Assembly: GCA_965112735.1 (NCBI GenBank)
Contig: OZ218951.1
Coordinates: 2,232,001 to 2,296,000, forward strand
Length of the DNA stretch: 64,000 nucleotides
Direction of reading: 5' to 3'
Origin: Phaeosaccion multiseriatum
Lineage: Eukaryota > Protista > Ochrophyta, other classes
Below, in pieces: positions 19,151 to 34,143 of the stretch. Made by a program: the position numbers and the translations under genes. How positions within the stretch are numbered: the stretch's first letter is position 1; each line of letters opens with the position of its first letter. Under the pieces are notes generated by a model. The model did no database searches, had not been told where the DNA came from, and was given only the letters and a program-made list of their open reading frames with translations.

Positions 19151-21418
19151 TCAACTGAAGCCCCACCAGCGCTCCGTTCCCTCCATGCAAGAAATGCCGA
19201 TTTTGTCCTTGAACGTCGTGAGGAAAGACACGAGGTCGGGCTCCCCCTCCAACGCCAACGGCACCGCAAAGGGCCCTACTTGCTTCACTAACTCCCCCTC
19301 CTTCGTCCACGGACCTGCTGTCTGCCCCAGCACTCGGCCGATCTCTCGCACAAGAGCCTCTCTTGCCTTATCTCGCTTCATAGCCTCAATCGCCCCTTGC
19401 TGCCTCTCCTTCTCTGCGGCCTCTGCCTCTCTCTTGGCGAGGGCGGCTGCGGCAGCGGCGGCGGCGGCTTCCTCGGGGGTAGGGGGCACGACGCGTCCCT
19501 TCCTTCCTCCTCCTCCTCTCCCTCCATCTCCGCCTTGTCCTCTCCCCACCATGCCCCCCCCTCCTGCTTCAGCAGCGTTACCACCGCTATTGGTAGCCCT
19601 CTCTTCACCGCCACCTGCCCCTGCTGTAGAGCCGCCCAACGTCGGGAAGGCCGCTTCGTTCGCATCGTACGTCCAGGACACAATCTTCCCTCCACGTCGT
19701 GTCATCCTCACGCCTGCCACGGCACAGGCACCATTATACACACACACACCAACGAGGAGCGCAGCAGGGCGACAATTACAAGGTGTTACAAACCACACGA
19801 CACACGACACACGACACATGACACCACAGAACCCCCCTTTCCGACGATTTCACCGCCCCCCACTCACCCTCCGTCCTCCCTTCCTCTCATCTCCCGTCCC
19901 TCACTTATCCACCCACCACCCACTACTATACTGCCATGCTCCCACGAACCACCCCGGTAAGTCATCATCCACACGTCGTTTCGCCCCTCTCCTCCATCCT
20001 CACCGGCACTCTCTTGCAGCAGCTGGCGATCCGCGTCGCTGGCAGGGAAGGAAACGCCTGTCTTTGCCTTGACGAGGCTCTGCAGCTTCGTCTCAGGCAC
20101 TGCCCCACCCAAGTGCATCAGCACATCCACGCCAATCTCAGCGCAATCTTCCAACTGCGCCTTCGTCCGTGGCACATCACTTCCTCCTCCTCCTCCTCCT
20201 CCTCGAGTCTGAAGCCCCGCGGCGGCTTTGGTTCCTCCTCCTCTTGTCTTGGGTGGAGGCGCTGCTGCCGAAGATGCCACCGCTGCTTTCTTCTTCAGGG
20301 CAGCCCTACTAAGCTTGGGCTCGGGCAACGCACACACCCCCACTCCTACCCCCACCGACACCCCTCCTCCTCCTCCACCACCACCACCCCCCCCGCCCCC
20401 TCCTCCTCCTCCTCCTCCTCCTCCTACGCCACCACCACCACCCCCACCAGCTCCTCCATCCGCTGCACCGATGCGGTACTTCTTCTTCTTGGGCATCTTG
20501 ATGCACCCCCCAACGTGATTCACCGCGAACATCCCCACACTCTGACGACTCCCAAATAACATCTCGAGGGTCTCTGGGCTGGGATCAAAGCCCACCACCG
20601 CCTCCACCTTACTCTGCAGCGCCTTCTCCTCCGCCCACTTCTTTGCCCCCTTGCCGCCACCGCCAATCATATCCGCCGCTCCCATCTCCCACAGCGCCTC
20701 CTCAATCGCTCGTTTGAGATTGTCTCGGTGCAAATCTGCGTCATTCGGGTCGAGCACATGATACACCACCCCCCGGCCCGCCTGTGCAGCAGACTGCTTC
20801 CCTTGCGAACTGCACATGATGCCGGGAATGCTCTTGATGAACTTGTGCACGTTCTTGTGTGCTGCATTGCTAATGATCGAAACTGTCGCGTTGGTCAAAG
20901 GTAGCCCCACCCAATCGCGAAACTCCGGCGCCAATTCCTTCTCCGTCTGTCCTCCCCTCGCCGTAATGGCCCCCACAATCACTCCCCGGGCCCTGTTCTC
21001 CGCCTCCTGAGCACTACTCTCCAGCGCCCATAGCCCGCCGGAGAAGGCCTTGACATCCGGTAAGCTCTGCAGAAATTGCTTGGAGAGCACCGCATCCCAG
21101 TTGGTCGTGCCCCCTCCCCCTCCACCACCACCCGCCGAGGCCTCTTGCCCTTGCAGCGCTTTCTTCATGTCCTGCAAAGTCATGAAGCCTCCGCTGTCCT
21201 GCAGAATCATGAGCACTTGTCGAGCCTTCTCATTGTTGCCCCTTCCTCCTCCTCCTCCTCCTCCTCCTCCTCCTCCTCCTCCTCCTCCTCCTCCTCCTCG
21301 TGCTGCTGTCTTCCCACTGGACATGCTCCCAGCAAGGGCGTCCATCTCCGCAACTCCTCCATTGTGTCCCTCATACCCGCCGTTGCTGTAGCCGTTCCTA
21401 CCACAGCCAAGACCATTC

Positions 21419-21457
<39 letters not shown>

Positions 21458-22860
21458 TGCCCATATGACTGCTGCTGCAGTCCATATGACTGCTGCTGCT
21501 GCCCATATGGCTGCTGCTGCTGCTCGTGTTGCTGCTGCTGGCGAGAGTCGCCCCCCCCTCTTCCACCCCTCACGTCCCTGGCGTCTTGCCGTCCCCCAAA
21601 TGGAACCGCTCCACCGCCTCCGCCACCCTGCTGCTGCCCATATTGCTGCTGCTGCTGCTGCTGCTGCTGCCGCCTACCCTTTGGTTGCTGTTGCTGCTGA
21701 TACTGATTTTCGCCACCACCTCCCCTGCCGCCTCTAATATTGGACTGCTGTCGCCCATGCTGCTGCCCTTGCTGCTGCTGCTGTCCATATGACTGCTGTT
21801 GCCCGTGACCTCTTCCTCCGCCACCGAAGCATTCGCTTTCGCTTTCGTTGTCGAACCTCCCTCGCCCCGCGCGCCCGCCTTCCTGCCCATATGACTGCTG
21901 CTGGCCAAAGCCAAACGCCCCCCTTCCTCCTCCCTGAGACTGGTACCCTCCCTGCTGCCCTCCATGTTGCCCTCCCTGTTGCTGCTGCTGCTGGCCATAC
22001 GAGCTCTGAGGCGGCGCTTGCTGTCGGACGTTTCGGAAATCCCCCCCGTTCGCTGCCACCCCCCCCCAGTCTCCTCCTCCTCCTCCTCCTCCTCCTCCTC
22101 CTCCTCCTCCTCCTCCTCCTCCTCCTCCTCCTCCTCCTCGTCCTCCTCCTTCTCCTCCCTGCACCTTTTGACCCCTCGGCCAAATCTTCCTCGGGGCGGG
22201 CGGCTTGTAGGCAATGCTCTCCTCCTCCCCTTCCTCCCCACCGCCATTAACTCTACCCTCCTCCTCTTTCCGTAACGCCTCCAGCTCCTCGTCCCGCAGC
22301 CTCGCCGTCTCTTGATCGAGCTCGGCGTCCGTAAAGCCAAAGAGCTTCTGCAGCATCTTCACCAGCGAGGCCTGTGGCTCCATGGTCTCTTCCAACCTAA
22401 CGCACTCCCTATCGAAGCGCTTGGCGCCCTCCATCTTCTCTCCACTGAGGCTGTGTGGCAGCAGCGCGGTGCGCACGGTAATCCCGAAGGTCATGAGCGC
22501 CAACGCGAGCCAGTTCTCACCAGGGGGAAGCACGGTGATGCCCTCGGCCTTGGCGCCTCCTTTCTCAAGATCAAGCATGTTTCCGGCGACGGCGTACAAA
22601 ATCTCGGACTGGTGTGATTGAAGATATATATATATATATATATCGCGCAAAAGAGGGAGGGGGCGGGAGAAGCACACGGAACATTGGGCAGAGAATGGAT
22701 GGCATACAAAGCATATTGAGGCACAAGAAGGGGGGGGGGGGGGCACGAAAGAGAGAGAGAGGGTACATAAAATACACGTTCAAAAACCAAACCGAACGCT
22801 TCAGCTCGCTGCCAAGTACCTCGGGGACAGGCAAACAAACAAAGAACCGAAGTCATGATG

Positions 22861-23045: not shown

Positions 23046-24319
23046 GAGGCGCAGGTCTCGAAGAGTACTGTCCGACGCAAGCGAATTTAATTATCTTCCC
23101 CCTCCGCTCTTCCCACTTTCACATTGAAAAAACCCCTCCCCTCCTTTTACACATTGAAGAAAAAAAAACTCTCTCCTCTTTTTCCATTGATAAAAGCACC
23201 TCCTCTCCTTTTATCACATCGAAAAAAAGCCCCTCTCCTCCTCTTTCACACTACGTACAGCTCCTCCCCTCCCCTCCCCTCCCCTCCCCTCCTCTTCCAC
23301 GCATCGTACCTTGTTCTGATGAATGGCGGCGGCCGCCAGAGAGTTCCTGGGCATGTACACAGTCCCACCACGCTCCGATATAGGCGAGCAGGCCCACTGC
23401 GGCACGGGCACACTCAGCTTGATGTTTAAGGTGCCCTTGCCGCGGTCCAGGCGGTCTGAGGGAGGGAGAGGAGGGGGGAGGGAGGGAGGGAGGGAGGGAG
23501 GGAGGGAGGGAGGGAGGGAGGGAGGGAGGGAGGGAGGGAGGGAGGGAGGGAGGAGCTTAGGTATTACGGGTGTGCTCCAAAGTAAGTACAAAGGAAGAAG
23601 GAAGGAGTTAAGAGAGAAATAAGAAGGAGAAGAAGGGGAGCAGACAAAAGACACTCACGCAAAAACAAACCCAAAAACACACACACACACACACGCCGAC
23701 ACGCACACGCACACGCACACACAGCATCCATCCCTTCATTCCTTCCTTCGCTCCCTCACCTGCCCACAGATGGAACATCCTGTCCCTGTTCCCCGAGGCC
23801 ATCTGCCCCACGATTCGAGCTCCGAGGGGAATGTCATCCACCAGCGGAGTGCCCCTCCACAGAGGACCATCTGAGCCCTTCACCCCACCACCCCCACGGA
23901 GTCCTTTCTTCCCTCCTCCTCCGCTGCCCTGGGGGTTGAGTATGGCCCCTTCGGGAAGGGCGTCCGCAGGGAAGACGAGCTGCTGCTTGTTGTCGCCCTT
24001 CTGCACGTGAATCTCATTAGCATGCACACCCAACAGGTGCCCGAGTTGGTTCTGGTTGGCAGGGATGCCCGACAGCACGGCGTTCATGTCGGATGGGTTG
24101 ACAATCACACCAATGGCAGAGCTCAGCACGTCCAGCAGCACCTACAGGGTAAGTAAGGGTAAGTAAGACAGGGCAGTTTTCAGTTGTCAGTTGTCAGTTT
24201 ATGTCACCTTATCAATATCGAACACCATAAATGGAATCGATATTAGGGGGGGACACGGTGAGGAGGAGCAGACTGTGGTTTGATGGATCGAGCGAGCCGT
24301 CTATAATCATATACACACC

Positions 24320-24367
<48 letters not shown>

Positions 24368-27300
24368 GAGGAGTGGTAGCGGGACGCACGTGAACTCCCC
24401 AAAACACCCCCAGCTCACCTTCATGGACTCCCTCTTACGCTTGGTGGAGCTCGTCACCAGCTCCACTATCACCTCTGGCGGCGGTCGAGGCGCCATACTG
24501 CTGCTGCCCCTCCTGTTGCTCCCGCTCACCTCCGCCTCCGCACCACCACCACCAGCCGCCGGCGCCGCCGCTGTTGCTGCCTTGGCAAGCTCATTCTTCT
24601 TCTGCTGCACCACAATGGGTCCAAAGATCTCCAGCAGCACGTCCTCAGCAGCAGGGAAGGAGCTCTGGCGTATCCACACGCGGATCTTCTCCGTGTCTGA
24701 CACGAGCCGGTAGATGAGCCACGCCACACACACCGAGTCCGCAACGGCTTCACGCAGACCCTAGTGGAGCAGTGGCGTGGGGGTTATTTGGGAGGGGGGA
24801 GGGGTTGGAGGGCGGGGGGGGGTGAGTGGGTGAGCGCGTGAGTGAGTGAATAGGTGAGTGGGTGAGTGAGTGCAAAGGGCGGGGAAGGTAGGGGCAGGGA
24901 CGGGAGGTGAAGCACTTCGTGTACCCCCCCCACCCCCCCCACCCCCCCATCCTCCATCCTCACTCTCCCCTTCCACTCTACTTCCCACACTCCCTCCTCA
25001 CTCTCCCCTCCCACTCACTCTACTTCCCTCACTGCCCTTCCCTCACTCCCTCCTCACTCTCCCCTCCCACTCACTCTACTTCCCTCACTGCCCTTCCCCT
25101 CACTCCCTCCTCACTCTCCCCTCCCAATCTACTTCCCATACTCCCTCCTCACTCTCCCCTCCCACTCACTCTACTTCCCCCACTGCCCTTCCCCTCACAC
25201 CTCACTCTGCCCTCACTGACGCATTGAACCAAAACTCACTGTCCTATGAACCAAAAACTCAAACTCTTACTACGAAGCATGACTTAATTGTATGAATCAA
25301 AAACTCTAGTGACTTGAGAACTAAAAACTCACCCCTGCTAGCTGCTCCTCCCCCACACGGCACATCCCTCGGGCGGTGCAGTTGCTCCGAAGACCACTGT
25401 CGAAGGAGAAGGGCACAGAGGGGGGGAACACACTCTCCATGTACGCGGCAGGCACCATGTCGCGGGTGAGGCTCGTTAAGGTTACTTTGAGGCCGCCCCC
25501 CTGAGACACACCACCGGCCTGAGGGGAGACAGGCAGGGAGGGAAGGAGGGAGCGAGGGAGGGGGCGAAGGGGTGAGGGGGTGAGTGGAAGTAGAGTGGAT
25601 TCTTTCCTCCAAATCAAAAGGTGGTCCGCGTCTCTCTACATCTCGCCCTCCCCGACAGACAGTAGCCCAGACACTCCCCACACTCTCCCTATATATACCC
25701 CCGATCTCCTACCCTCCACCGCATACCCCATGTTTATGATATATACCCAGTACCTCATACCGCATACCCCATGTTTATGATATATACCCAGTACCTCATA
25801 CCGCATACCCCATGTTTATGATATATATACCCAGTACCTCATACCGCATACCCCATGTTTATGATATATACCCAGTACCTCATACCGCATACCCCATGTT
25901 TATGATATATATACCCAGTACCTCATACCGCATACCCCATGTTTATGATATATACCCAGTACCTCAAACCGCATACCCCATGTTTATGATATATACCCAG
26001 TACCTCATACCGCATACCCCATGTTCATGATATATACCCAGTACCTCATACCGCATACCCCATGTTCATGATATATACCCAGTACCTCAAACCGCATACC
26101 CCATGTTTATGATATATACCCAGTGCCTCATACCGCATACCCGATGTTCATGATATATACCCAGTACCTCATACCGCATACCCCATGTTCATGATATATA
26201 CCCAGTACCTCAAACCGCATACCCCATGTTTATGATATATACCCAGTACCTCATACCGCATACCATGTTCATGATATATACCCAGTACCTTGTCCTTGAG
26301 CTTCTGCTTGCCCGTGGGGCGGCAGAGCATGAGCTGATCTTTAAAGGTCCACACGAGGAGGAGGCGCATCAAGTTGAGCTTGGCAGGGGGCATTCGGGAT
26401 GGGTCGTGGAGGATACGCGGTGTCGGGACCCCAAGCAAGCCTGCCACTCGTTGGGCCAGGTGTCGGGAGGTGCTGCTCAGCTGATAGGGGACCATATACA
26501 GAAAACAGAGCGACGGGGGGGGGGGGGGGAGGTTGGTGAGGGTGTGAGGGTGGACAGAGAGAGAGAGAGAGAGAGAGAGAAGCAGGGGTTGAAGTGTTAG
26601 AGTGGAGTATGGGAGGTAACAGGCCTGCACTTTTCACAACCACCACCCCAACCAACCAACCAACCATTGCTAAAGAAGGAGGCATACCGGCCCCCTCCTC
26701 CTTCCATCCCACCCTCCCCTTCTTCCCTCCCACCCTCCCCTCCTTCCCACCCTCCCCTCCTTCCCACCCTCCCCTCCTTCCCTCCCACCCTCTCCTCCCT
26801 CCCACCCTCCCCTCCTTCCCTCCCACCCTCCCCTTCTTCCCTCCCACCCTCTCCTCCCTCCCACCCTCCCCTTCTTCCCTCCCACCCTCTCCTCCTTCCC
26901 ACCCTCCCCTCCTTCCCTCCCACCCTCCCCTCCTTCCCTCCCACCCTCCCCTCCTTCCCTCCCACCCTCTCCTCGCTCCAACCCTCCCCTCCTTTCCCCC
27001 CCTTCCCTCACCTGGCGCATGCGTGAGTGTGCGAGGGCGTGTGCCTTCATGAAGCTATCCCTGTGCTTTTCCGCCAGGTTATTATAGGCAAAGAGCAGCC
27101 GCATCAGCATGATGGGCTCGGAGTACACCCCTCCGTCGAACTTGGCCTGCCCCACCATGGTCTTGGCCACAATACCATTGTACTCATCAGGATCGTCGTG
27201 AATCAACGGAGAAGTCACTCGAAAGGGCGTACGTGGCAAGGACAACGCCGCTGCCATGACAATGGCCTCTGCAATGACGCCCATCTGTGCTCCCAAGCCA

Positions 27301-29629
27301 ATCATCCTCCCCAGCAGCAAGTCCACCCCGAGCGAGGCGACAAAGGTTCCCATCACCGTCATGTCTCCGTCGTCGTCGGCTTGACTAATAAAGCCCGACT
27401 CATGCAGGGAAGCAAAGGCCCGTCCCATGTGCTCCATCTCCGGCGGCTCGATGACGTCAAGCAACACAGGTACCACCTTGGTGTCAAGCATGCTCTTGAG
27501 CCCTAGAATCACTGCATCCAATGGTTGCCGGTGCATCTCCCCTTCCTCAAACTCCGGCATGTGGGTGTCAAACAGCTCCCTCGAGTACAGCCGATACGCC
27601 GACCCTGGTCGTGTTCTTCCGGTCCTGCCTGCCCGCTGCGTTGCCGAAGCACGCGAAACCCATGTGGCCGCGAGCTGAGCCCGGTGGGTCAAAGGGTTGT
27701 ACTGCAGCTGCTTCTCCGTCCCCAGGCACACCACATGGTCCACGTCGGGGAGCGTTACTGAGGATTCCGCGGCGTTGGTTGCGATGATAATCTTAACCTC
27801 ATCCTGATCAGGGCGGGAGGGAGGGAGGGAGGGAGAGAGGCAGGGAGAGACGAGGCATGCTTAGGCTACGGCCGTGGGGTCGGATGGGATGGGAGATGAT
27901 GGGGGACATCAACGTGGTAAGTCCACACACACACGCAAACACACTCACTCACTCACACACTCACACACTCACACAAACATACACACACACACGCACACAC
28001 GCACCCACCCATGGACATGACGTACCGGTGCTCCAGGCTTGAATGCCTCCATCTGCTCCTCGAAGGGAATGTCTCCATGAATGGCAAGGCACTTGTACGT
28101 CACTCTTGTAGAGCGCACCTCCTCAAACTTGGAGGTTATCTCCACGATGTCACCCATTCCAGACACAAAGATGAGCACCGCCGAGCCGGGCTTGCCCACC
28201 GTCCTCGCCACCTGCACAGCAAGGGTGTATTGGAGGGCGTTGCTGCGGGTGGAGGGGGGCCCACCTCCTCCAGTCATTTGTGCAAGCTTGTCGGCGTCGT
28301 CGCCAACCCGATGGGGCAGCTGCAGCGCACTGCGAAGGTCCTCCGCAAAGTATGTGTCAATGGGAAAGCGACGCACCCCAACAAAGAGGGGCGGCTCCGG
28401 CACACCAAAGTACTGCTGATACATGGCCGCTGCAATGGTTGCGGACATCAAAATGAGCTTGATGCGGGGGTTGGTGGCCAGTAGCCTCCGTGCCATGAGG
28501 CACAAGATGTCCGTGTCCACACTCCGCTCGTGTACCTCGTCGATGATAAGGTGCGTGTGCTTGTCAAATGTCTCGGGGTGGTGTGCCATGAGTCGCACCA
28601 AATACCCCGTGGTCACGAACCAAATGCGCGTCTGTGGCGACTCCTCACGCATGCCGTGCCCCATGCGGTACCCCACCAGCTTGTCGTAGCCCGGCATGCT
28701 CTTGACACGGTCCATGAGGGCCCGTACGGCGATGCGTCTCGGCTGACTCACAAACATGCGCGTGTTGGGTACAGCGTCATAGATGATGAGCGGTACTCGG
28801 CTGCTCTTGCCGCACCCCGTCTCTCCGTGGATGATGGTCACCCGATGCTTGTCAACGTGCTCCAGAATGCGATCCCTGTGCTGATCAATGGGGAGAAGCG
28901 TCGTGTCCGCTGCTCTGTCCCACATTTCCTCATCCTCCACCTCCTCCTCCTCCACCTCCGCCTCCTCCGGCTCCTCTCCGTCGTTCCACGCCTCATTCTT
29001 CTGCTTGAGAAGAGCGGCGGTGGTGGAGTCCTTAGCCTTTGTTGCCTTTGTTGCCGACTTGGTAGTGGGCGAGGTGCTCGCATTCCGCCCCACCCGAGGG
29101 CTCGCTTGCTTCTTCCCAATCTCGTCCTGGGCCAGAAGGTCCTCGTACCACACCTCCTGATCGCTGTCGCCCGCCTCCACCTCCGCCTCTGCTTCCTCCC
29201 CCCCGTCCACCTCTCCTCCTCCCTCGCCGCCGCTGCTCAGCAGGAGGTCTATCTTCTTCGCCCCATCCCCCTTCCCTTTCCCTTCCCCCGTAGCAGCAGC
29301 AGCAGCAGCAGCCCCCGCCGCTAGCTTATGGAAGGTAGCACCATCGTACCAGTCCTTCGGCGAACCCTCTAGCAGGGGAACGACACTCTCCGAGCCTTCC
29401 TCACCGCCCTCCTGGCTCCGTCTCGCCTTGCCCCACAGCTTCGATAGCGTCCTCTGATAAGCGTAGGACACGCACACACCCGTCCAGGTGGGCAGGGGCA
29501 GCGACGCATCCTCCTCGAGGCGGGCCCCCCTGGCCATGGCGAGTAGCGCCTGCTCCTGTCCGTCCGTCAGCTCATTGCCGGCCAGCTTCATGCAGCGCAC
29601 AGCAGCAAGGCCGGGAAGGCCCTCGTCCT

Positions 29630-29661
<32 letters not shown>

Positions 29662-32600
29662 CGGGTAGACAGGTAGACAGGTAGACAGGTAGACAGGTAG
29701 GTAGACAGGCGGGTAGGTGGGCAGGCAGGAGGAGGGAAGGATGAGGACCAAACAGGAGAGGCGTAAGTGAATGGTATATACGAAGATGAGACGCGAAACA
29801 AACATTGATCGTGGCGTGCGTGCGTGCGTACGTATATGTGTGAGTGGGTGTGTGCGAGCATGAATGTGCACGAGGCAAGTCTGCCCCGTCTCTCCAATCG
29901 AGCTGGAGCTCACACTAACTAACCTGAGGTAGCACCGCCAAATCGGCACTGTTCTTGTTCAGAAAGTGCACCTCGGGGGCTCCGGAGCCCTTTTCGGACT
30001 CCTCGTCCAGAGGAAAGTCTGTGAGGAAGAGGAAGGGCGGGGGGTTGCGAGAGATGGGGTAGGTATAGAGCAGGGTGCTAAGAAGGGGCGAGCTCCCAGC
30101 TCTACACCTCTCTGCCCTCTAAAGAGGCCTCTCACGAAAGGAAAGGAAATCGTGCGTGCGGGAAGAGACGGAGAGGGCGTGGAGGGGGGGGGACTGAAGA
30201 GCGGATTGGCATCTCCGACCCCCCACCCTTTCAGGCAGACACACGGCAAGCCCCAGACAGAGACAGAGAGGCGATGATGGAAGCGTGTGTGTGCAGCTAA
30301 CAGCTAGCAGCTAGCAAAGTGGATCAGAAGAGGAGTAGAAATGATTAGCGGTTGGCACGGTGGTGTGTCTCCTTACCTTCCAGTGACTCCAGCCCATAGA
30401 GAGCCCGGCAGAACAGCAGAGCCATTGCCGTTTCGTCTGCCTCGCTCGCCCTGATTTTGGTGTTGGTTGATGGGAAAAGATTTCAAGCAAGCACGGAGAC
30501 AACAAGTAGAGGGTGAGCGAGCGTACGGAGCGGGAGTACAGATGATGGAGGAAGCTTCACCCCCATAGTCCCTCCTTCCCTCCTTCCAATCCCACCCTAG
30601 ACAGTCATCACAGACATCTCTCTTTGACGAACAAGGAGATTTCATTTGTCCCCGCCCCTCGTCCACTCCTCACTCACGAAGTATTGGCCACAAGCTGAAA
30701 GTCGGGCTCCTGTCCCCTGACCCACTCCAGCGTCTCCTTCGGCTTGCGCTCTCCGCGAATGAACTTGCTCAGCAGCATCAGCTTCTTTCCTCCTCCTCCT
30801 CCTCCTCCTCCTCCTCCTCCTCCTCCTCCTCCTCCTCCTCCTCCTCCTCCTCCTCCTCCTCCTCCTCCTTCACCTCCTCCTCCTCCTTCTCCTCCCTCCT
30901 GCGCGCCCCCCTGGCCTCCCTCGCCCCCATCCTCCCCGCTCTTATCCTCCATATCCTCCTGCTCCACAGCAAAGGCGCTAGTGGGCAGGTGACTCGTGTA
31001 GTCCGTGCCTATTAGAATGGCCCATTCGACCAACGCCGACTCGGAAAGCCCTACCGCCTTGGCCAGCGTCGTCCTATCCCACACGCGTGCCGAGGGTGCC
31101 TGCCCCTCCGTCAGCTCGAGCTCGTCGAAACGGATGTAACGACATTTGGCAAACATGTGGAAGTCGGAGTCATTGCCCAGCACGAAGGACCGCCCCTCGG
31201 GGTCTGAGGCACTCTCTTTGGCGATATCTGTGGCAAGCAAGGAGGGAGGGAGGGAGGGGGAGGGGGAGGGAGTGAGTGAGTGAGTGAGGGAGGAAGGGGG
31301 GGGGGAGGGGGGGAGGGAGAGAGGGAGAGAGGGAGGGAGAGAGAGAGGGAAGGAGGGAGGGAAGGAAGGAAGGAAGGAAGGAAGGAAGGAAGGAAGGAAG
31401 GAAGGAGGGAGGGAGGGAGGGAGGGAGGGAATGAGGGAGGGAAGGAGGGAGGGAGGGAGGGAGAGAGAGAGGGAGAGAGAGGGGAAGGAAGGAGGGAGGG
31501 CCGGGACGAAAGTGATCGCCACACAAACGTGTGAGAGATTGGGAGAGCAGGTGCGGTTCCGGGGGGGTGCGTGTAGGACAACAGAGTCGTGTTGATCCTC
31601 CTGCTCGCGGCTCCAACACCCGCATGACAGTGAGCCGAGGTGCCAGCATTGTGCTACTACCAGCACCCTGCTCCTGCTGTCCTCCTCTTCCTTCTCTCAT
31701 CCTGCCTCTCCTTCCCCCCCTCCCTCACCCCCACCCCGAAAGGAAGGTCTGCTGAAGTCCCTTGACTTACTTACCCTGGTCAGCCTCTCCTTCGCACTGC
31801 ACGCACTCCACGCCGAGCTGCTCCATCGTCACTCTCATCTGGGTGGTGGTAAGTGCCGGTGCCGGAAACCGAAGCCCCTCCGGGGGTCTGGCCCCATCTA
31901 GGCACCACCCGTGCAGTGCATCCCACTGCTCCCTCTGGCGCTCCTTCCTGGCCTTTTGGCACGCGGTCTTGAGCTGTCGATCACTCCCGTCCCAGTACGT
32001 GATGGGTTCGATGCCGGCTGTGACAGGGATGTTTGTTGTGTTGGTTTTGTTTTGTGTGAGAAGAAATGGTGTGTGTACGAGAGTCCCCCTCACAAGAAGA
32101 AAGAATCCAATCCAAATACAGCGAGGCCGAGCCGTGGTCGGACGCAGATGGAAAATTCAGAGGAATCGGCGGGGTGTTGAGGGCGGTGTGTGTTGATGCG
32201 GGAGGAACATACAGCAGAGGGGGACATCAGACCATTTCACTCTCCCCACTTCGGTCTGATCTGTCCGCCAGTCCGTCGGTACGCGTGAGTGCCTCACCTT
32301 CTCGCAGGAGTCTGATGGTTCTCGTTGCCATGGCATGCACTCTCTCAAAGTCTCCACCGAGATCGCTTCGCACCTCACCACCGCCACTGCCCCCGCCGCC
32401 ACCTGCTTTCGATGGAGCTCCCTCCTCTGCTGCTTGCTCTGGCTCCGGTGCTGGCGCCACAATGACATTGTCCCTTTCCATACAGGCGTGGGCCCACCCC
32501 GACCCATCTATGAGCAGTCGGTCTCCCTTCCTAAGGTCTGTTGTGTGTATCGAGAGGGAGCGGGTGACCAAATGCCGGCCACGGAGAGTGAGAAAAAAAT

Positions 32601-32949
32601 AAAGACGGAGATGTCATCCTTCTTAGCTCCGCCCCAGCCCCGCCCCCCCACGCCTCCTTCTCACAAAGGCACCCGCAGCAAATAGCGGAATCTTCTTCAC
32701 TACCTCCCCCCCTCTCCTCCTCCTCCCCCTCTCCTCCCCCCTTTCCTTCCTCAGTTCTTGGATACTGGGAATGGATAGTACTCTCTCTACCCTCTGTTCC
32801 ACTGCTCTTCCCTAGCAACTGTTGTAACCTCCGACAAGTACTTCGCTCCTCTCTGCCTTCCTCTCCGCTTTTCTTCCTCACTCACCTTCCCATCGGACGG
32901 TGCCGCCCAGCTGGGAGCTTATATAGCTTCGCAGACGCTTAACCCCCAT
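19151..32949 (-). CDS. Giant multidomain protein (~2709 aa, 15 exons): Asteroid/FEN-like PIN nuclease + DEVH-box DEAH/RHA RNA helicase + HA2 + G/Q-rich IDR + tandem LOTUS/OST-HTH-like domains
   Basis: Exons 32949-32886, 32537-32298, 32017-31775, 31227-30678, 30450-30377, 30018-29924, 29627-28026, 27803-27012, 26480-26289, 25518-25333, 24760-24419, 24141-23760, 23455-23310, 22608-19950, 19713-19151. All are GT..AG and phase-compatible, totalling 8130 nt (2710 codons). PIN motifs: MGVKRL, LLIDG, YWDG, EGEAD, NDSDF, IGTDY. Helicase motifs: GETGCGKS, SQPRRIA, DEVH, SAT, ATNAAESSVT, QRAGRTGR. Confidence 0.85.
25718..26288. repeat. ~41-bp minisatellite (~14 copies) at the 5' end of an intron of the helicase gene
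   Basis: The unit CCGCATACCCCATGTTTATGATATATACCCAGTACCTCATA is tandemly repeated with minor variants. Confidence 0.92.
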
Positions 32950-33164
32950 CGTTCCTCCGCAGTACTCCGATCGCCTCAGCACTTCACGACCTCCCCTCCT
33001 TGTTGTTATCTCTGTCTCAGCTCCACTCTTTCTGCAGAGTGGGCGCTTCTCTTTTTGAGTGATCTGATCTGATCTGATCTCGAGGGGCCCCCCGGGTCCA
33101 GACGATGGGCGCCTAAAAGTAACGTTTTCTTCCAGTTGAATTTGCCCTGTCCCCACCCCGTGCT
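32950..33164. promoter_or_regulatory. Probable bidirectional promoter between the helicase gene and the secreted-protein gene
   Basis: Divergent ATGs at 32949 (-) and 33165 (+) lie 215 bp apart. The interval contains (GATCT)x4 and a GGGGCCCC palindrome. Confidence 0.55.
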
Positions 33165-34143
33165 ATGCGTCTCAAGGCAACCATATCTCAAGCCCTCCTG
33201 GTGCTGCTCCTAGGAGTAGGAGGAGGAGGAGGAGGAGGAGGAGGAGCAGTATCAGGGCAAGGGATTAAGGAGGAGACAGAAGAAGAGAAGGGCGGAGGTG
33301 GGGTGGCCTCCACCTTCCCCCTGGCCTTTACCGGCGTAGTCGAGACCGTCGCGCACCTCGTGGACCGGACAAAGGACTACCCCCCTTGGTATGGGCGATA
33401 CGAGGTCTCCTACGATTATGGGAGGGGAAGGGCCAAGGCTGTCGTGACTCACGGTCTCGACAAGGGAAAGACCTTCCTTCGTAGATACGACGACAAAAAG
33501 GAGTACATGATTCGAGGCGGGGAGTACCCTGCATGCAGACGCAGTTATCTGGGGGAGGACATGCCGCTTCCCGTTCTGCCCTCCGACGAGGCAGCAGCCG
33601 CGGCAGTCAAGGCTGGCCGGGGAGGTGTGGCAGGGGAAGGCGTGTGGGTCAAAGACGACGAAATCGACGGCGAGGCACACGAGCACTGGGTACATGACGT
33701 GGTGAAAGGTAGGTGGGCATGGCTCCCGTGTTGAGTATGCTCTACGTGTATTCATTGGTCCCGTACTCATGCCGCCTGTGGCGGGACATGCCGTGCGGCC
33801 TCTCTCTGTCCTTTTCTCACCTGCCAAACCTCGTTTCCTCACTCGTAGGCTCTGTCTCTCCCTGCATCTGTCCCTCTCTCTCGTTCCATCTTGTGTAGGC
33901 TCCTCTCAGTACCACATCTGGCTGAACAAGCAAACAGGGCACCCCCGCAGGCTGACAGACGAGGCGCTACAGCCCGACGGATCTACCCAGGCCCTCATGA
34001 CGTACGAGCTCCACCTCAATGCCACTTCCCCCCCACATGATGACGCCTTCGACCTACCTCAGCCCTACACTCACAAGCTGTGCGAGCTGCATGTTGGGGG
34101 CTATCCGTACCTACACCTCTTCCAGCACCTCTTCCGCTTCTGA
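33165..34143 (+). CDS. Secreted protein (~262 aa), probable ependymin-related/LolA-like fold; exons 33165-33708, 33899-34143
   Basis: Signal peptide MRLKATISQALLVLLLG, then a beta-rich pattern (VSYDY, FLRRYD, C.R..L, IDG...HW, P.RL) and a C-terminal F.LP.....C motif. The phase-1 intron joins cleanly. Confidence 0.7.

Follow-up and report, generated by a model that had tools for sequence, protein, structure and literature searches.

Introduction

Nucleases of the FEN type thread and cut 5′ ends and flaps, and few groups within the FEN superfamily are as poorly understood as the Asteroid/ASTE1-type proteins. Dna2, WRN, Cas3, and Dicer are nuclease-helicase fusions. In bacteria, PhoH2 represents a fusion of PIN and PhoH (PMC5499597). 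Among the described relatives of the FEN fold, a role as a DNA-end nuclease has been reported for ASTE1, and a link to RNA for FAM120A and Mkt1; Mkt1 and FAM120A/B/C form the Mkt1-like group of the Rad2/XPG family (PMC12345631). Here, we describe a gene in a stretch of 64,000 nucleotides of GC-rich, repeat-rich DNA from the ochrophyte alga Phaeosaccion multiseriatum (contig OZ218951.1 of assembly GCA_965112735.1, positions 2,232,001 to 2,296,000 of the forward strand), which as a whole is called the window. Positions 32949-30377 of its minus strand probably encode the N-terminal FEN/XPG-superfamily nuclease domain (PIN-like fold) of a larger protein, nearest to Asteroid/ASTE1 and bearing a full two-metal active site, the gateway Lys and Arg, and a helix-three-turn-helix (H3TH) element. 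We predict that this domain works as a structure-specific 5′ nuclease dependent on metal; it is followed in the same polypeptide by an intact DExH helicase and belongs to a conserved family.

The FEN-superfamily nuclease fold itself is known; new is an Asteroid-like clade of this superfamily that is defined by its fusion to a DExH helicase. The nuclease-DExH architecture marks a conserved eukaryotic family that is apparently unstudied, and it adds to the known set of nuclease-helicase architectures. No publication on the fusion was found in a literature search, which does not prove that it is undescribed, and a catalogue of the PIN superfamily gives XPG_I_2 as 'function unknown' and lists no helicase fusion for it.

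Nuclease exons and active site

An initial annotation, made from the letters of the window, had noted six motifs of a FEN-like nuclease spread over four exons. All six were located at the claimed places:

32949-32932, minus strand: MGVKRL
32517-32503, minus strand: LLIDG
31997-31986, minus strand: YWDG
31796-31779, minus strand: CEGEAD
31177-31160, minus strand: GNDSDF
31012-30998, minus strand: IGTDY (H3TH-like)

The four exons carrying them lie between 32949 and 30678 and are bounded by canonical GT-AG sites:

32886..32949, minus strand: exon 1, with the start codon at 32949 and the N-terminal MGVKRL, ending with 1 nucleotide of a split codon at a GT donor
32298..32537, minus strand: exon 2, with LLIDG followed by a low-complexity insertion of 31 residues, GT-AG
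31775..32017, minus strand: exon 3, with the YWDG Asp, the gateway Lys, the gateway Arg, and the EAD Glu and Asp
30678..31227, minus strand: exon 4, with both DSD Asp, the H3TH-type GTDY Asp, a Gly-rich low-complexity stretch, and a conserved helix

Introns 1-3 are all in phase 1, with the codon split after its first base G, the split codons being Asp, Ala, and Asp. The domain had originally been assigned to 30975-32949; the conserved domain does not stop at 30975 but takes in the remainder of exon 4 and also exon 5, to about 30377.

For the identification of homologues, 90 residues of exon 4 were searched with HMMER against 1.84 billion cluster representatives, whereby 136 proteins matched at E up to 0.001, the best of them being 60% identical to the query. 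From 39 N-terminal domains of these homologues and the four window exons a profile, A1, was built. It matches residues 1-242 of human FEN1 (E 6e-21) and also archaeal FEN1, EXO1, Rad2/XPG, and GEN1. Residue correspondences were counted along the printed alignment of profile and FEN1, and the codons in the window were checked. In this alignment, which was decisive for the claim that the acids match metal-binding carboxylates, they fall inside the active site:

32508-32506, minus strand: Asp of LLIDG, corresponding to FEN1 D34
31991-31989, minus strand: Asp of YWDG, corresponding to FEN1 D86
31970-31968, minus strand: gateway Lys, corresponding to FEN1 K93
31949-31947, minus strand: gateway Arg, corresponding to FEN1 R100
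31787-31785, minus strand: Glu of EAD, corresponding to FEN1 E158
31781-31779, minus strand: Asp of EAD, corresponding to FEN1 E160
31171-31169, minus strand: first Asp of DSD, corresponding to FEN1 D179
31165-31163, minus strand: second Asp of DSD, corresponding to FEN1 D181
31003-31001, minus strand: Asp of GTDY, corresponding to FEN1 D233

Within CEGEAD, the catalytic pair consists of the second Glu and the Asp (E-A-D), while the first Glu is not catalytic and stands in a column that varies in the family. The positions of A1 that are nearly invariant (numbered as in residues 19-340 of the homologue P0002) are M1, G2, D32, D81, K88, R95, E149, D151, D172, D174, R216, G238, and D240, and the window carries the consensus residue at all 13. 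An absolute N-terminus beginning with MG is typical of FEN-superfamily nucleases; M1 and G2 are present in 41/41 aligned rows (MG.xGL), to which MGVKRL of the window corresponds. The motif set is far beyond chance and the observation is real. Over the 41 rows, the seven carboxylates, the Lys, and the Arg are invariant or nearly so at an overall identity of about 30%, and this strict conservation of nine residues argues for an active two-metal 5′ nuclease. The view of the initial annotation that the nuclease is probably active appears reasonable in the light of this conservation.

Fold and relationship to Asteroid and other FEN-superfamily members

The fold was modelled with AlphaFold for residues 19-340 of P0002, with A1 as alignment, and not for the product of the window itself. 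The model has a mean predicted local distance difference test score of 88.3 and a predicted template modelling score of 0.87. With this model, a Foldseek search of the PDB returned FEN1, Rad2, EXO1, and XPG at a probability of 1.0, with template modelling (TM) scores of 0.42-0.56 at a sequence identity of 15-19%. A shape search of the ESM Atlas gave Asteroid homolog 1 (TM 0.77-0.78), fungal Asteroid-domain proteins (TM 0.77), FAM120B (TM 0.75), Mkt1 (TM 0.68), and FEN1 (TM 0.66). The gateway Lys and Arg are placed on a long helix (residues 89-112 of the P0002 model), the shape of the arch being known from the model alone. The insertion of 31 residues encoded by exon 2 falls in a surface loop between helices in the predicted structure of P0002. 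The Gly run of exon 4 comprises about 27 residues just after the H3TH motif, is encoded by (GGA)n on the minus strand, which reads (TCC)n on the plus strand (window 30790-30880), and is absent from the closest homologue.

In a profile search of a collection of 5.8 billion proteins, family members scored 283-353 bits, followed by Asteroid_N or XPG_I_2 proteins at 69-131 bits. The nearest outside proteins of Asteroid type reached 102-131 bits, including a fish 'protein asteroid homolog 1-like' (107 bits) and a Nematostella 'Asteroid domain-containing protein' (102 bits); FEN1, matched with the A1 profile, reached 78 bits. By profile score as well as by predicted fold, ASTE1-type proteins are thus the nearest outside relatives, and the label 'Asteroid/FEN-like' chosen in the initial annotation holds. 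In a maximum-likelihood tree, 40 family rows are split from eight Asteroid-like proteins with a support of 100/99. This tree is unrooted and contains no FEN1 outgroup, and therefore a sister relation to Asteroid is possible only. On these sequence comparisons, we assign the window domain to a separate Asteroid-like clade and not to ASTE1 itself.

Among the family rows, XPG_N was detected in 19/44 and XPG_I in 18/44, and XPG_I_2 in 12. P0002 itself scores 18-19 bits for XPG_I_2 at a cut-off of 24.2, whereas P0034 (30.5 bits) and P0131 (31.2 bits) pass it. Asteroid_N (PF27698) was not matched in the Pfam scans, in which the presence of that model in the scanned set is uncertain.

With Asteroid/ASTE1 (PF12813, PF27698) the family shares the style of its motifs (xEADxEIA, DSDFF, GNDY) and the same seven acids, Lys, and Arg, but ASTE1 has a C-terminal region of its own and no helicase, where the window family has a DExH helicase, and another locus of this genome fits XPG_I_2 better than the window gene does. 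FEN1, EXO1, XPG, and GEN1 (XPG_N plus XPG_I) have the same bipartite N and I catalytic core, agree one to one in the seven carboxylates, K93, R100, and the H3TH Asp, and are the best matches among solved structures. They differ by the low identity given above, by the Pro-rich segment that the family has for the cap, and by being stand-alone repair nucleases, and their canonical copies are present separately in the genome. Mkt1 and FAM120A/B/C have the fold in common with the family, and their link to RNA metabolism would suit an RNA helicase as partner; however, Mkt1 and FAM120 have long C-terminal halves that are not helicases.

Catalytic domain or binding module

Several points have to be set against an expressed and catalytically active nuclease domain. 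The window exons stay below the curated cut-offs of Pfam (exon 4 matches XPG_I with E 0.004 and 17.9 bits versus 24.9), and XPG_I_2 gave no match to the exons scanned singly at E up to 10. Two low-complexity insertions lie inside the nuclease domain. Where FEN1 has the cap helix, the family has a conserved Pro-rich segment (LPxPxL), and therefore substrate selection may differ from that of FEN1. Expression and splice junctions are predicted from conservation, as is the catalytic activity of all family members; the public runs for the organism are four DNA-contig runs only, all from one sample and one study. Their contigs are identical to the window and probably not independent of the assembly. 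Finally, Mkt1 and FAM120A, relatives with the same fold, serve as scaffolds that bind RNA (PMC12345631).

The low scores of the single exons agree with further scans of this kind: exons 1-3 scanned singly against Pfam and the sequences of the PDB gave nothing significant, and exon 4 alone found the Rad2/XPG H3TH region among the PDB sequences only weakly (E about 0.5). Scans of single exons are weak because the exons are too short, so that family profiles are needed.

In an alternative role, of the kind proposed for Mkt1 and FAM120A, the FEN fold would be a non-catalytic module binding nucleic acids or proteins and would recruit or steer the helicase without cutting. Mkt1 and FAM120 have the same fold and are described as RNA-granule or regulatory proteins (PMC12345631), and activity in the family is deduced rather than observed. 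Against such a module stands the near-invariance of the seven carboxylates and the gateway Lys and Arg over 41 rows at about 30% identity, which is expected under catalytic selection and hard to explain for a scaffold. We consider a purely binding role unlikely and retain the reading as an active nuclease. A pseudogene was considered and rejected, since there are no stops and all sites are intact.

Fusion to the DExH helicase

Downstream of exon 4, the minus strand continues as follows:

30377..30450, minus strand: exon 5 (inferred), a conserved helix after the nuclease core with the family motif A..FSR.LY.L..L; GT-AG and phase fit
29924..30018, minus strand: exon 6 (inferred), a linker with FPLDEE; GT-AG and phase fit
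27972..29627, minus strand: exon 7 (given as far as the frame stays open), linker and first half of the helicase with motif I GETGCGKSS, motif II DEVH, and motif III SAT
26673..27800, minus strand: second half of the helicase with motif VI QRAGRTGR and an HA2-like region, collinear with homologues

Exon 7 probably ends earlier than 27972, at a splice donor. Together, the helicase frames contain a complete DExH core, in which GETGCGKSS, DEVH, SAT, and QRAGRTGR are intact. Pfam DEAD was matched with E 8.7e-10 and HA2 weakly (E 0.0055), and no match to an OB-fold was found in these frames. The best relatives among solved helicases are DHX9 (E 5e-31) and Spindle-E (E 6.7e-30), followed by Prp2, DHX29, and MLE.

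Exons 5 and 6 bridge exon 4 to the helicase frame with GT-AG sites and matching phases. Exons 1-6 sum up to 1266 nucleotides, and the chain is open, without stops, into the helicase frame. Exon 5 aligns to residues 338-361 of P0108 and 351-372 of P0002. The family motif, in its full form A..FSR.LY.L..L...P.D, crosses the junction of exons 5 and 6, and a single P0002 residue lies between the aligned pieces, as the split codon predicts. Full-length homologues are collinear with the window, first with the nuclease exons and then, at 45-50% identity, with both helicase halves. Among the homologues of at least 800 amino acids, 28/32 have Walker A and DExH motifs after the nuclease. Each subclade of the tree includes rows with the helicase, and most of the rows that lack it are short fragments. 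With Pfam, XPG_N and XPG_I or XPG_I_2 were found together with DEAD and Helicase_C in eight long homologues; in P0108 and P0177 the helicase domains alone were detected. The coupling to a downstream helicase that had been proposed for the nuclease therefore holds at the level of gene structure, as a continuous reading frame and a conserved fusion.

It could be objected that nuclease and helicase belong to two adjacent genes and that the fused models of homologues are artefacts of gene prediction, since the fusion in this genome is deduced from genomic DNA without transcripts and many homologues in the databases are short fragments without a helicase. However, exons 5 and 6 span the gap, the conserved motif passes over their junction, and the Phaeothamnion protein P0002, starting at its N-terminus, stays collinear with the window up to and within the helicase exon. 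Moreover, fused models come from independent sources, namely NCBI genomes, EukProt transcriptomes (including an open reading frame of Diaphanoeca marked 'type:complete'), and metagenomes, and the short rows without helicase interleave with fused rows in the tree. Two separate genes are highly improbable, and we rejected them on the basis of the collinear homologues and the motif over the exon 5/6 junction.

The C-terminal thirds vary among the members and are mostly unannotated. In P0014, a metagenome protein, residues 1750-1952 contain C2H2 zinc fingers, including a weak match below cut-off to the jaz type that binds double-stranded RNA. In other members no C-terminal domain can be recognised, so that the family combines a constant nuclease-helicase core with a variable accessory tail. 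In the window, four large minus-strand frames further downstream (19154-19819, 19867-22746, 23611-24141, and 24215-24733) gave no Pfam match at E up to 0.01, including OST-HTH/LOTUS.

Copy number and distribution

The family profile was run over the 67-Mb genome of the alga and matches one locus only, that of the window (exon 4 with E 2.6e-33, exon 3 with E 1.6e-22, exon 2 with E 1.4e-6). For this reason the nuclease-helicase gene is regarded as single-copy. In the same genome, at least five other XPG_I loci exceed the Pfam cut-off; the five on contigs C14, C5, C15, C1, and C3 look like the canonical set of FEN1, EXO1, XPG, and GEN1. A separate XPG_I_2 (Asteroid-type) locus at G000:C3:4834759-4834941 scores 26.2 bits, over the cut-off, and is probably the stand-alone Asteroid-like gene of the alga.

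These loci bear on another reading, in which the window gene would be nothing more than a common repair nuclease (FEN1, EXO1, GEN1, or XPG) or the ASTE1 orthologue of the alga. For it, FEN1, EXO1, and XPG as best solved-structure matches and ASTE1 as nearest named family could be cited; with the XPG_I and XPG_I_2 loci elsewhere, the family profile confined to the window locus, the 100/99 split from Asteroid-like proteins, and a helicase that FEN1, EXO1, GEN1, XPG, and ASTE1 do not have, this is highly improbable. The canonical FEN1/EXO1/XPG identity was rejected on the genome-wide profile and the Pfam locus results.

The closest named homologue is P0002 of Phaeothamnion confervicola (CAM9262064). 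Further named members are from Aureococcus anophagefferens (KAH8071535), Epithemia (KAL7579290), a Nitzschia species, the green alga Cymbomonas tetramitiformis (KAK3232905), the choanoflagellate Diaphanoeca grandis, and the transcriptome of a Eutreptiella, a euglenid. The clade is thus spread over distant eukaryotes: besides ochrophyte algae and a green alga, it occurs in a choanoflagellate and probably in a euglenid. Genes of the family are now labelled 'hypothetical protein' or 'HrpA-like RNA helicase', so that the nuclease half is overlooked.

Proposed mode of action

Helicases of the DEAH/RHA type travel along the bound strand in the 3′ to 5′ direction, and the relatives of the helicase described here are RNA helicases that in some cases also work on DNA and R-loops. 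Due to the 3′ to 5′ movement, the displaced strand would be freed from its 5′ end and would thereby become a substrate of FEN type. We infer catalytic activity, coupling direction, and substrate along these lines. After loading on a 3′ single-stranded tail, the helicase would run 3′ to 5′ and strip off the complementary strand, beginning at the 5′ end of the latter; the nuclease would thread the freed 5′ flap or end through its gateway and cut it. Such unwinding and cutting by one chain, with structured RNA, RNA-DNA hybrids, or DNA as substrate, is the most likely mode of action. With Dna2, WRN, Cas3, Dicer, and bacterial PhoH2 it has in common that a motor exposing single strands and a nuclease are located in the same chain, but they differ from it in the nuclease fold, here FEN-type, as well as in the helicase family, here DEAH/RHA, and none of them shares homology over the entire protein.

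The clade keeps a complete active site that is permanently tied to a DExH helicase, and thereby offers a testable hypothesis for the substrates of Asteroid-type proteins, i.e. 5′ flaps or ends generated by a helicase. It is possible, although on balance we have doubts, that the family represents an unrecognised widespread eukaryotic enzyme, in which a DExH RNA helicase feeds displaced 5′ ends to the attached Asteroid-type 5′ nuclease and which would serve RNA surveillance or silencing or the removal of RNA-DNA hybrids in algae and other protists. If true, the family would be in effect a one-chain equivalent of helicase-plus-5′-nuclease pairs such as YTHDC2-XRN1 or of Dna2-type processing, and animal ASTE1 would be a helicase-less cousin.

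Further features of the locus

Intron 3 (window 31240-31500) consists almost wholly of a microsatellite of GGGA/GGAA type. Short-read contigs break there, and the word depth is near zero (bins 31206-31553). In contigs of two DNA runs, a skip of 306 nucleotides from 32403 to 32710 was observed; its shorter side has 20 matching letters and lies in the CT-rich repeats of intron 1 and exon 2. It was treated as an artefact, most likely of repeat-induced assembly.

The ATG of the nuclease-helicase gene (32949, minus strand) is located about 215 bp from the ATG of an open frame on the plus strand at 33165 (window 32950-33165), which opens with a hydrophobic stretch resembling a signal peptide. They probably form a divergent gene pair with a common promoter region.

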